Virus record (IMG/VR): IMGVR_UViG_3300024239_000011
Coordinates: 479,036 to 543,035 of that record
Direction: 5' to 3' (one strand)
Length of the DNA: 64,000 nucleotides
Of the stretch, positions 24,655 through 42,480 are shown piece by piece. The notes under the pieces are model-generated. The model was not told where the DNA came from, did no database searches, and was given only the letters and a program-made list of their open reading frames with translations. The position numbers and the translations under genes are program-made. How positions within the stretch are numbered: position 1 is the stretch's first letter; each line of letters starts with the position of its first letter.

Positions 24655-24895
24655 ACATGCGCCTGAAGTTCTGAACGACATGGCAGACAAGCTTAATCTG
24701 CCGATGGGTTATCAGAGTATTCTTCGCAGTACGGCAAGCCGTATTGAACTTCTTCGGTCAGTGGTTGAACACTGCTGGATTCATTCAAACTATCCAGACT
24801 GCGGGTATACCCAAATGACGACCGAACAAAAAGAAATGTATAATTGGGCTATTGGGCGTGAAAATGTGGTTGACAATATCGCCGAAGAAAGTTAA
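24641..24895 (+). CDS. Hypothetical protein
   Basis: MNTLEHAPE start overlapping the upstream ORF end. Confidence 0.55.
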   Translation: MNTLEHAPEVLNDMADKLNLPMGYQSILRSTASRIELLRSVVEHCWIHSNYPDCGYTQMTTEQKEMYNWAIGRENVVDNIAEES

Positions 24896-24927: not shown

Positions 24928-25196
24928 GTTCGGGTAGCTTAGTGGTAAAGCAATCGACTTTCAATGGGAGCTTCTACAAGAAATTGTAGTCGATCACTGC
25001 TCAAATTCGGGGAACGCTGTAAAATGCCAATCCCGAGCCAAGCCGCGAGAGCGGAAGGTGTAGAGACTAGACGGGCAGCACCTACGGCAGAATGCTACGG
25101 TGAAGGGATAGTCCAGACCACAAACCGTAAGGGCGGTAAAAGCCGAAGTGGTATGTAATCGATAGACCGAGGGTTCGAATCCCTCCCCGAACACCA
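24928..25196 (+). tRNA. tRNA-Lys(UUU) interrupted by a group I intron (exons 24928-24961, 25156-25196)
   Basis: Splicing restores ATCGA-CTTT|TAA-TCGAT; GTTCGGG/CCCGAAC acceptor, CCA end; promoter TTGACA-17-TAAAAC at 24870-24898. Confidence 0.88.
24962..25155 (+). mobile_element. Group I intron (194 nt, no ORF)
   Basis: P AAATTCGGGGAA, Q AATCCCGAGC, R GTAGAGACTAGA, S AAGGGATAGTCCA; 5' exon ends in U, intron ends in G. Confidence 0.9.
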
Positions 25197-25203
25197 AAGT
25201 TTA

Positions 25204-25233
25204 AAAAGGCTGGGATTTATTCCCAGCCTTTTT
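25204..25233 (+). terminator. Rho-independent terminator after tRNA-Lys
   Basis: AAAAGGCTGGGA/TCCCAGCCTTTT. Confidence 0.85.
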
Positions 25234-25284
25234 GTTTTCGGCTTGTTCTCATATCTAACCTGGGTTAGACTCTTCTGATGATTC

Positions 25285-27369: not shown

Positions 27370-27415
27370 GATCAATGTGTTGTTGGATGAGCGATCAATG
27401 TGTTGTTGGATGAGC
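27370..27415. repeat. Exact 23-bp tandem duplication
   Basis: GATCAATGTGTTGTTGGATGAGC twice. Confidence 0.95.
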
Positions 27416-27475
27416 GTAAGTTCAGACCCGCTCACCCCGACCTGTCTAAGTATTTCGGCACAAAAGGATTATATG

Positions 27476-27958
27476 ATGCTTGAAGTGGTAGTGGTGCGAG
27501 TTGAAAACGTGACGAATCATCCTACGCGGGATAGTTTAACAATTAACACTTTATCGGATGGTGCTATCGCAGTGAGTAATCGAAATGACAATGGAACACC
27601 GCGATATGTTATTGGGGATTTAGTTGTAAGAATCCCCGAGCGCGCCATCGTTCCCGAATGGCTGCTGAAGCATCAGCATTGTTGGGACGAAGCCAAGGGC
27701 AAGGGCACCTGTGCCGGTTCCAAGGGCAACCGCGTCAAGAACCGCAATTTTGATGGTATCGCCTCGGAAGGCATGCTATTCGCTGGTACACAGGATAACA
27801 AGTATGCTCCTGACATTGAACCTCCCGAGGGTGAAGAGAACGATAAGTTGTACAAGAGCGGGCGCATTTTGGTGATCCGAAATGAATCCTCCGATGATTA
27901 TTTCTTCCAAGGTGATTCGGTCATCGACTTCCTCGGGATCACCGAGTGGGAAGGCTGA
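27476..27958 (+). CDS. tRNA-binding OB-fold protein resembling the N-domain of DRB0094-type RNA ligases
   Basis: VVRVENVTNHPTRDSL...GDLVVRIPERAIVP...RVKNRNFDGIASEGML; no ligase core follows. Confidence 0.6.
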   Translation: MLEVVVVRVENVTNHPTRDSLTINTLSDGAIAVSNRNDNGTPRYVIGDLVVRIPERAIVPEWLLKHQHCWDEAKGKGTCAGSKGNRVKNRNFDGIASEGMLFAGTQDNKYAPDIEPPEGEENDKLYKSGRILVIRNESSDDYFFQGDSVIDFLGITEWEG

Positions 27959-29416: not shown

Positions 29417-29727
29417 TCCGGCGTAGCTCAGTTGGTAGTAGCATCTGACTGTAGATATGCAGCTTCCATCAGTAATGATGGTCGAATAACTGGGTGAATT
29501 CGGGGAAACCCTAGTAATAGGGCAATCCCGAGCCAAGCCAGGGGAAGGTCGTGGTACCCTGGAAGGTGTAGAGACTAGGTGGTGAGGAACCAATCCAATA
29601 AACCACCCGCGAGCGCCCAGCACCCTAACAAGTAATGTTGAGGGTGATGATATAGTCCACTTCCGATAGTAATATCGGGTTAAGTGTAATCAGAGTGTCG
29701 CAGGTTCGAGTCCTGCCGCCGGAACCA
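29417..29727 (+). tRNA. tRNA-Asn(GUU) interrupted by a group I intron (exons 29417-29452, 29687-29727)
   Basis: Splicing restores TCTGA-CTGT|TAA-TCAGA; TCCGGCG/CGCCGGA acceptor, CCA end. Confidence 0.9.
29453..29686 (+). mobile_element. Group I intron (234 nt, no ORF)
   Basis: P GAATTCGGGGAA, Q AATCCCGAGC, R GTAGAGACTAGG, S GATGATATAGTCCA; terminal G; GNRA-capped P2 and P9. Confidence 0.9.
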
Positions 29728-36306: not shown

Positions 36307-36386
36307 GATCACTTCAGTAGCTCAACGGTAGAGCAAAAGTATGATAAACTTTCCGTGCGGTTCAAATCCGCCAGTGATTTTCACCA
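36307..36386 (+). pseudogene. Degenerate tRNA-Ile(GAU)-like element
   Basis: Intact D arm (GCTC/GAGC), AAAGT-ATGATAA-ACTTT anticodon arm and GGTTCAAATCC T arm, but the acceptor stem GATCACT/AGTGATT is offset by 4 extra nt, with extra nt before ACCA. Confidence 0.6.
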
Positions 36387-36407: not shown

Positions 36408-36484
36408 GGACCCTTAGCTTAGTGGTCGAAAGCGCCGGTCTCATAAACCGGGGATCGTTGGTTCGAATCCAACAGGGTCTACCA
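36408..36484 (+). tRNA. tRNA(CAU), Ile2-like
   Basis: GGACCCT/AGGGTCT acceptor with C4-G69 and C5-G68, CCGGT-CTCATAA-ACCGG, A73, CCA. Lacks the initiator hallmarks. Confidence 0.85.
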
Positions 36485-41728: not shown

Positions 41729-42480
41729 GGTGTCACCTCGATCATCTTAAGAGCTTCCCGGTCCATTTGTAGGTCTGGGGGATATTCCCAGCGAAGTTGG
41801 TTGATCTGGGCATCCGATAGCTTGTCCCAGCCCGGCATCATCCGCAGTTGGGCTTCCTGCACTGCGCTTTCTTTTGGACAATCTTCCGGACGCGGCGTCT
41901 CCCGGAACATCAAGGCGGTGTAGTAACGATACTTCCGTCCGACCAGTTGGTAGTTCATCAACGTGATTGACGGGTTGGCGAACGTCAGCAGCAGAGAGGA
42001 CAGCCGCTTATCCAGCATGTTGAAAGTCAACACGCGGGTGATCGCGCTAACCGGGATGTCGCCCATATAGGCGCATGTTCCCATGGCGTCCAGCGACTTC
42101 TTCCACGTTTGCTTGTCGGCGTATTCGTAGAGGTTGTCACGGTACCACGCCGTGCGTTGTTCCATTGACCAGTCGAGCGGCAGATCATCGACCGCCACAC
42201 CCCGACGCGGGCGGCTTGTCTGTTCGAGAACATCTTCGTCCGGGACAAACTGCCATGGGTCCAGGCGGTCGGTGTCGATCTCGATAATCGCGGCGGTCGT
42301 GTCTTTTTTGGTCGCGCAGTTGATCGAGAAATAGGGCGCGTAGGCATCGGTCAGGTAGACCGCCTCGCTGTTGCTCATGACAGTGTGCTGCCAGTGACCA
42401 CGCCGTTTCCCACGCGGGGTCAGCCCGTCCTTAAGGATTTTGGGCAGGAAACGTCCTGCGGTACCATGATAGAGCTTCAT
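41725..42480 (-). CDS. Putative ADP-ribosyltransferase-fold protein
   Basis: MKLYHGT...ILKDGLTP...VYLT...IIEID (H-Y type ART-like core). Confidence 0.55.
   Translation of the reverse strand: MKLYHGTAGRFLPKILKDGLTPRGKRRGHWQHTVMSNSEAVYLTDAYAPYFSINCATKKDTTAAIIEIDTDRLDPWQFVPDEDVLEQTSRPRRGVAVDDLPLDWSMEQRTAWYRDNLYEYADKQTWKKSLDAMGTCAYMGDIPVSAITRVLTFNMLDKRLSSLLLTFANPSITLMNYQLVGRKYRYYTALMFRETPRPEDCPKESAVQEAQLRMMPGWDKLSDAQINQLRWEYPPDLQMDREALKMIEVTP

Follow-up and report, generated by a model that had tools for sequence, protein, structure and literature searches.

A small IC3-like group I intron in a phage tRNA-Lys(UUU) gene, an ordinary member of a large family of small tRNA introns

The DNA analyzed here, i.e., the window, is a stretch of 64,000 nt that makes up the last 64 kb (479036-543035) of an IMG/VR virus record. 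The record is rated complete and has a length of 543,035 bp with a GC content of approximately 48%. Genome-wide, 66 uninterrupted tRNA genes were called by ARAGORN, most of them in a minus-strand array at 77-172 kb and two in the window. By its length and its 66 tRNA genes, the record is therefore that of a huge phage whose tRNA set is nearly complete. By codon count, AAA and AAG were both frequent in the phage. On the plus strand of the window, a tRNA-Lys(UUU) gene was read from the sequence at 24928-25196, and this gene includes an IC3-like group I intron of 194 nt (24962-25155) with no ORF of its own.

Other RNA-related genes were observed around the locus and in the rest of the genome. A 193-aa ORF at 27377-27958, 2 kb downstream of the split tRNA-Lys, showed a weak match to the tRNA-binding family PF01588 (21.9 bits, below the cut-off). 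A tRNA-like sequence (window 36311-36379; Rfam tRNA, 39.7 bits) without an ARAGORN call was placed just upstream of tRNA-Met(CAU) at 36408-36484. On the minus strand of the genome (96422-96505), ARAGORN called a tRNA with a four-base anticodon (ctta), which is possibly a frameshift-type tRNA or an artefact. At other places in the genome, the phage has genes for two Rnl2-type RNA ligases and for AspRS; AspRS was the sole class II synthetase found, and a phage LysRS was rejected on this basis. RtcB was found at L255:1495-3894 (genome ~14.5-16.9 kb, minus strand) with a length of 799 aa, of which about 300 aa are inserted between profile positions 50 and 49. The insertion keeps an open frame and has an intein-like look, and no Pfam intein family matched it at E <= 0.001.

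The 5' exon of the tRNA-Lys gene (24928-24961, plus strand) contains the acceptor 5' strand, the D arm, the anticodon stem 5' strand, and C32, U33, U34, and U35, i.e., it ends in CUUU. The 3' exon (25156-25196, plus strand) begins with U36, A37, and A38, and continues with the anticodon stem 3' strand, the variable loop, the T arm, and the acceptor 3' strand; A73 is at 25193 and an encoded CCA at 25194-25196. The intron interrupts the anticodon loop, and its insertion site is between nucleotides 35 and 36 of the anticodon. When the exons were read separately, all stems were perfect (acceptor 7 bp, D 4 bp, anticodon 5 bp, and T 5 bp), and U8, A14, G18G19, U33, the T loop UUCGAAU, A73, CCA, and the anticodon UUU were recognized. 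A natural intron-less tRNA-Lys(UUU) was found in the viral contig L264 when 20 nt from the 5' exon served as the query. This homolog runs uninterrupted through ...CGACUUUUAAUCGAU... across the predicted junction, and it is identical to the exons over nucleotides 8 to 43 (8-35 within the 5' exon). Therefore, both the splice sites and the tRNA identity are supported. The predicted spliced anticodon loop is the canonical CUUUUAA, the same as in the L264 gene.

Automatic annotation handled this gene poorly. Without the intron option, ARAGORN missed it; with the option, the outer limits were right and the intron was misplaced. The resulting label, 'Leu(taa) i(34,176)', was ruled out by the U·G and terminal-G rules and by the intron-less homologs. 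The other 'intron' calls of ARAGORN in the whole genome were fusions of neighbouring tRNAs.

Downstream of the tRNA, an intrinsic terminator was predicted at 25203-25238 on the plus strand, with a GC-rich stem (25208-15/25221-28) and a U-run (25229-38). Folding gave a strong hairpin of -23.7 kcal/mol with a z-score of -5.3, although the consensus terminator scan was blank for this segment because the A-run and U-run extend the stem. Upstream, a weak sigma-70-like match (ATGACG-18-TATAAT; 24815-24844, plus strand) located 84 nt before the gene is a possible promoter only. The promoter scan gave 2 sites versus 1.4 expected from shuffles, i.e., not above chance.

The intron starts with C and ends with G, and its elements were assigned on the plus strand as follows. 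P1 (24958-24970) was assigned from the sequence and the Rfam alignment; CUUU of the exon and the first intron base C pair with GGGAG (24966-24970) across an AAU loop. It is short, i.e., 5 bp of which two are G·U, and at the 5' splice site U35 (24961) forms the U·G wobble with G24967. The P2 hairpin (24974-24989), seen in the MFE fold, has 6 bp and a GAAA tetraloop. The two strands of P3 (24997-25002 and 25073-25078) are supported by covariation and form a pseudoknot with P7. The P4-P5-P6-P6a domain (25006-25058), found by both covariation and the MFE fold, is composed of P4 (25006-12/25031-37), P5 (25016-17/25026-27; 2 bp with an 8-nt loop), P6 (25038-39/25057-58), and P6a (25043-46/25051-54; 4 bp with a GAGA loop). 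In P7, the 5' strand GACUA (25065-25069) pairs with UAGUC (25109-25113), again with covariation; we take this helix to be the guanosine-binding one, as is general in group I introns.

P8 (25079-25102) has a 3-bp tip and an internal loop, CCUACG/UACGG, that resembles the 11-nt receptor. The motif is two positions off the canonical 11-nt receptor, and it is not the IC3 receptor. By analogy, it is likely the docking site for the GAAA loop of L2, a contact known in IC3 introns (PMC11571812). The P9 three-way element (25118-25151) consists of P9 (25118-21/25148-51), P9a (25125-26/25131-32) with a GUAA loop, and P9b (25134-37/25142-45) with an AAAA loop. The terminal G (omega-G) marks the 3' splice site at 25155, in a GUGGUAxG ending that is conserved in the relatives. 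P5abc and P2.1 extensions are absent from this helix map, i.e., the intron is a small ORF-less ribozyme. The only ORF in the intron (24964-25158, 64 aa) runs 3 nt into the 3' exon and was taken as a chance frame because it would cross the whole ribozyme core; by the ORF check, no homing endonuclease fits in 194 nt.

The homology search and the comparison with relatives agree with this map. The Rfam model RF00028 matched 24951-25137 with 48.9 bits (E-value of 1.4e-11 in the local scan and 4.3e-12 genome-wide). The curated gathering cut-off of this model is 50, and the default Rfam scan did not list the intron because the score is 1.1 bits under it. In a MAFFT alignment of 13 tRNA-Lys intron sequences (A1), compensatory changes with almost no broken pairs were found in P3, P4, P5, P6, P6a, P7, P8, P9, and P9b, whereas P1 and P2 were left unaligned because their lengths vary too much. 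Altogether, 47 pairs showed double changes, tRNA stems included. In the 6-bp P3, five pairs had compensatory changes and none was broken in any of the 13 sequences; the 5 bp of P7 were invariant or compensatory, with A-U in six sequences and U-A in seven. The copy studied here has no broken pair in any core helix or tRNA stem.

The MFE fold of the intron alone recovered nine of the comparative helices, i.e., P2, P3, P4, P5, P6a, P8, P9, P9a, and P9b, with an unremarkable z-score (-1.13, intron only). P2 was capped by GNRA in 67 of 85 sampled introns. At the columns with at least 95% conservation among 65 other distinct introns, 68 of 71 were matched, which together with the covariation is far beyond chance. 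Of the three deviating columns, one falls in P2 and one in J2/3, and the third is the first base of L9b, where AAAA replaces the GNRA of 95% of the relatives; tertiary bracing could therefore be weaker than in the relatives. Judged from its sequence, the intron is a genuine group I intron, and it is probably active. The name IC3-like is given for the core that it shares with tRNA-Leu(UAA) introns. The sequence-only reading had placed a 194-nt group I ribozyme in a phage tRNA-Lys(UUU) gene with all core elements in that length. The coordinates were exact, the ribozyme is borne out by the cloverleaf, the Rfam match, and the covariation, and P1-P9, the U·G pair at the 5' splice site, and the terminal G are indeed all contained in 194 nt.

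Three more group I introns were identified in the same genome. The nearest relative is a paralog of 220 nt in tRNA-Gln(UUG) (locus L003:1441-1734; genome 116637-116930, minus strand), which shares 85% identity from P3 to the 3' end. The A-U pair of P7 is U-A in the paralog, and this compensated change implies selection on pairing. The host tRNA of the paralog is unrelated in sequence to the tRNA-Lys. According to intron-less homologs with the loop UUUUGGU, it is tRNA-Gln(UUG) split after U35 (UUUU/GGU), and by the same homologs the ARAGORN label 'Lys(ttt)' is wrong. The long U-run/A-run P1 of the paralog could slip one register, giving a UUU anticodon or an 8-nt loop. The next one is in the window, where a tRNA-Asn(GUU) gene (29417-29727) is split by a group I intron of 234 nt (29453-29686; Rfam, 84.7 bits). 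It is likewise inserted after U35, with CUGU/GCAG as P1, and its P8 has an IC3-receptor-like motif, CCCUAAC/GAGGG. The ARAGORN label 'Tyr(gta)' for this gene was rejected by the U·G and terminal-G rules and by intron-less homologs. The fourth group I intron of the genome (L002:1501-1740; genome 53955-54194; Rfam, 81.5 bits) is near the 5' end of a tail tube gene; in the downstream exon, the match to phrog_4542 starts at profile position 18.

Intron length was compared in a census by pattern scans of public viral contigs with exact motifs, which gave at least 85 introns, 67 of them distinct. A 20-nt string of the core was present in at least 120 viral contigs, and the delimited tRNA introns among the matches listed were 184 to 300 nt long, mostly in tRNA-Leu(UAA) with 196-213 nt. 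A 15-nt junction pattern gave mostly chance matches (only 15 of the 120 matches listed were real) and was replaced by a two-anchor pattern; this Lys-type pattern was found in 22 viral and seven bacterial contigs among the matches listed. Also among the matches listed, the tRNA-Lys(UUU) introns measured 183 nt (L190, L192), 184 nt (L042), 185 nt (L117, L202), 189 nt (L224), 192 nt (L242, L244, L245), 194 nt (L183), and upwards. The census median was 202 nt, and among the matches listed 37 of the 67 distinct introns were below 205 nt and eight below 194 nt. The shortest introns save length by a P8 cut to 4 bp and a loop. The present copy keeps P8 and economizes instead in P1 and P5, which are minimal, and in its short P6a.

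The Azoarcus intron has 205 nt and self-splices efficiently from its pre-tRNA (PMC13168695). The present intron is 11 nt shorter, which confirms that it is below this model in size (194 versus 205 nt; PMC13168695), as had been noted from the sequence. The proposal of a candidate minimal ribozyme did not hold, given natural relatives of 183, 184, 185, 189, and 192 nt, several of them in tRNA-Lys(UUU). The 194-nt copy is an ordinary member of a large, little-described family of small tRNA introns, and it is not special within it.

In its plan, the intron is close to that of Azoarcus. Both are ORF-less and located in a tRNA anticodon loop, and both have a P2 capped by GAAA, a P4-P6 domain lacking P5abc, a receptor-like motif in P8, and P9. 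The J6/7-P7-P3 core string is presumably near-identical in the two. The differences are the 11 nt in length, the phage tRNA-Lys(UUU) host with its site at 35/36, a P5 of 2 bp with an 8-nt loop, a P6a of 4 bp, and a P9 three-way element with two small hairpins. The tRNA-Leu(UAA) introns have the probable subgroup and the kind of site in common with it, but they are inserted after U34 and not after U35. Viral tRNA-Leu(UAA) introns share the exact 20-nt core and were the next-best BLAST matches, with approximately 80-87% core identity among the matches listed. The classical cyanobacterial tRNA-Leu(UAA) introns are about 250 nt or longer.

T4, Twort, SPO1-like, and other phages carry group I introns of the self-splicing type, but in protein genes (PMC3984707) and many with a homing endonuclease, whereas the present intron is ORF-less and interrupts a tRNA gene. 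This classical protein-gene kind is also represented in the same genome by the tail tube gene intron. In a 2014 review, all phage group I introns then known were in protein-coding genes, despite the many tRNA genes of phages (PMC3984707). 'Enigmatic' introns in phage tRNAs were reported in the Lak megaphage preprint, with the prediction that large phage genomes commonly carry them (10.1101/356790). Lak and other huge phages resemble this phage in having many tRNAs, some of them interrupted; in the part of that preprint consulted, the tRNA introns are given no class (10.1101/356790), whereas the present intron is assigned to group I (IC3-like) by structure and covariation. In the literature searched, with partial coverage, no description of a group I intron in a phage tRNA-Lys gene was found.

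The family is widespread in viruses and is also found in bacteria. Its host tRNAs are Leu, Lys, Arg(UCU), Thr(UGU), Asn, Gln, and CAU tRNAs, and tRNA-Leu(UAA) was the commonest among the matches listed. In other viral contigs, the intron-bearing tRNA-Lys sits inside tRNA arrays. No uninterrupted tRNA-Lys(UUU) was called in the examined flanks of the intron-bearing viral tRNA-Lys genes, which argues that the intron-bearing gene is a working one. Many viral intron-bearing 'tRNA-Leu(UAA)' genes (L103, L035, L115, L051, L014, and others) have a mature length of only 73-75 nt, i.e., without a long variable arm, which is odd for a bacterial-type tRNA-Leu. A tRNA-Lys(UUU) intron with the identical site, P1, and guide sequence was found in a chromosome-sized Rhodobacterales MAG contig of 2.37 Mb (L250), and Lys(UUU) or Lys(CUU) versions occur in Gemmatimonadaceae, Pyrinomonadaceae, and Anaerolineales MAGs.

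Only seven of 50,697 GenBank phage records matched. In the cultured Gordonia phage Daredevil, a tRNA-Lys(UUU) gene that is split by a group I intron of 238 nt and absent from the annotation adjoins the integrase gene gp54; it is on the minus strand in the gap beside gp54 (L260:1379-1690; NC_048021.1 ~41820-42131). This split gene could be relevant to the phage attachment site. In Pelagibacter phage HTVC120P (MH598807.1; L261:1164-1354), the annotation divides the capsid gene into two CDS, gp29 and gp30. The gap between them matches the intron core, and this gene is therefore probably interrupted by a group I intron.

In a quick maximum-likelihood tree of 85 introns, the intron was grouped (SH-aLRT 92) with its paralog, the Daredevil-type tRNA-Lys(UUU) intron, and tRNA-Lys(CUU) introns of Acidobacteriota MAGs. 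The clade of 183-196-nt tRNA-Lys(UUU) introns nests among short tRNA-Leu(UAA) introns, and the Lys(UUU) label changes at least three times on the tree even on well-supported branches. Tree groups mix tRNA identities, and the introns have therefore switched host tRNAs. The tree tells of host switching and not of its direction, because the sample was picked by exact motifs and the alignment is short.

We consider it to be a functional phage tRNA-Lys(UUU) gene with an ORF-less IC3-type intron that is a neutral or selfish passenger, and we give this reading a probability of about 0.8. It builds on the observed anatomy, homology, covariation, and distribution of the intron. A tRNA-Lys precursor of about 270 nt would be transcribed and end at the terminator (25203-25238). 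The intron is predicted to fold into P1-P9 with the P3/P7 pseudoknot; the GAAA loop of L2 probably docks on the receptor-like loop of P8, and the P9 tetraloops may brace the P4-P6 domain. Free guanosine would bind in P7 and attack after U35, which the internal guide GGGAG would keep in the U·G wobble. The 3'-OH released at U35 would then attack after the terminal G25155, and ligation of the exons would give a tRNA of 75 nt with the loop CUUUUAA. With its UUU anticodon and A73, the spliced tRNA should be charged by the host LysRS. Neutrality of the passenger is the default assumption. The widespread lineage of compact (183-240 nt) anticodon-loop introns has changed places between tRNA genes whose loops are rich in U, in phages as well as in bacteria.

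An intron in the anticodon loop might also serve counter-defence or timing, i.e., the precursor would be invisible to PrrC, RloC, and PARIS AriB, or the supply of tRNA would be delayed. Such a role, which goes back to the sequence-only reading, would let the phage make up for host tRNA-Lys that had been cut. Relatives of the Lys(UUU), Gln(UUG), and Asn(GUU) isoacceptors are classic targets of anticodon nucleases, and these are the three intron-bearing tRNAs of the phage, all split after U35. An intron at this place necessarily removes the nuclease substrate from the precursor, which is a matter of logic and not of data, and RtcB with two Rnl2-type RNA ligases is consistent with pressure from RNA-cleaving defences. 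The tRNA-Lys of T5 reportedly acts against PARIS, and T4 is said to repair tRNA-Lys cut by PrrC; the present phage resembles them in its tRNA-Lys(UUU) and RNA repair ligases, but is unlike them in that neither an escape feature in the tRNA-Lys sequence nor a linked defence system was found. The predicted spliced loop is canonical, as in the intron-less L264 gene, and the mature tRNA therefore has no evident escape change in its loop. The precursor is unusable in translation, and the genome has further Lys tRNAs among its 66 others. Moreover, the family also occupies Leu(UAA), Arg(UCU), Thr(UGU), and CAU tRNAs and chromosomal tRNA-Lys of bacteria, a spread that fits the need for U ahead of the splice site and not one given nuclease target. 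The findings checked give a Lys-specific counter-defence role no support, and we regard such a function as very unlikely. The wider version, in which the Lys(UUU), Gln(UUG), and Asn(GUU) introns are kept because the precursors are nuclease-invisible and splicing meters out fresh tRNA, has an equally small chance; if true, it would be an RNA-only counter-defence or timing device in phage tRNA genes.

Two other readings concern the activity of the intron. It could be a real intron that is not autonomous, whose reduced periphery allows efficient splicing only with an RNA chaperone or protein cofactor of the host or the phage. The minimal P1, the 2-bp P5, the short P6a, and the non-GNRA L9b would fit this, and many group I introns need proteins in vivo; however, the Azoarcus and Anabaena tRNA introns, with the same architecture, self-splice without protein. 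Such self-splicing, the efficiency reported for the Azoarcus pre-tRNA (PMC13168695), and the retained L2 GAAA loop and P8 receptor-like motif make a dependence on cofactors unlikely here. Decay of the element, i.e., an intron that no longer splices in a tRNA-Lys pseudogene made dispensable by other Lys tRNAs, is still less probable than either of the foregoing. It would agree with the lost GNRA of L9b, the two other differing positions, the Rfam score slightly under the cut-off, and the presence of other tRNAs with UUU and CUU anticodons. These features are set against intact pairing in every core helix and tRNA stem, the 68 of 71 conserved columns, and the compensated P7 change relative to the paralog. 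The other Lys tRNAs are also atypical. The uninterrupted tRNA-Lys(UUU), tRNA-Lys(CUU), and tRNA-Asn(GUU) genes (genome 99623-99712, 103623-103711, and 98917-99008, minus strand) are 89-92 nt long with unusual, long class II-like variable arms, and both Lys tRNAs have U73. Therefore, the split gene is the only canonical tRNA-Lys(UUU) in the genome.

The intron itself is neither the smallest of its family nor demonstrably tied to defence. Phage group I introns extend beyond protein genes, contrary to the 2014 review (PMC3984707). In public viral contigs, IC3-type introns interrupt well over a hundred tRNA genes that belong to at least seven anticodon classes, and this phage alone has three such genes. 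The family offers natural and sequence-diverse scaffolds smaller than the Azoarcus intron (205 nt), down to 183 nt among the matches listed. P5, P6a, and P8 are shrunk in different ways across its members, which makes them directly comparable for studies of ribozyme folding. Default tRNA finders miss such split genes; ARAGORN missed or mislabelled all three of this phage, and the tRNA-Lys of Daredevil is unannotated. The tRNA repertoires of phages are therefore undercounted.
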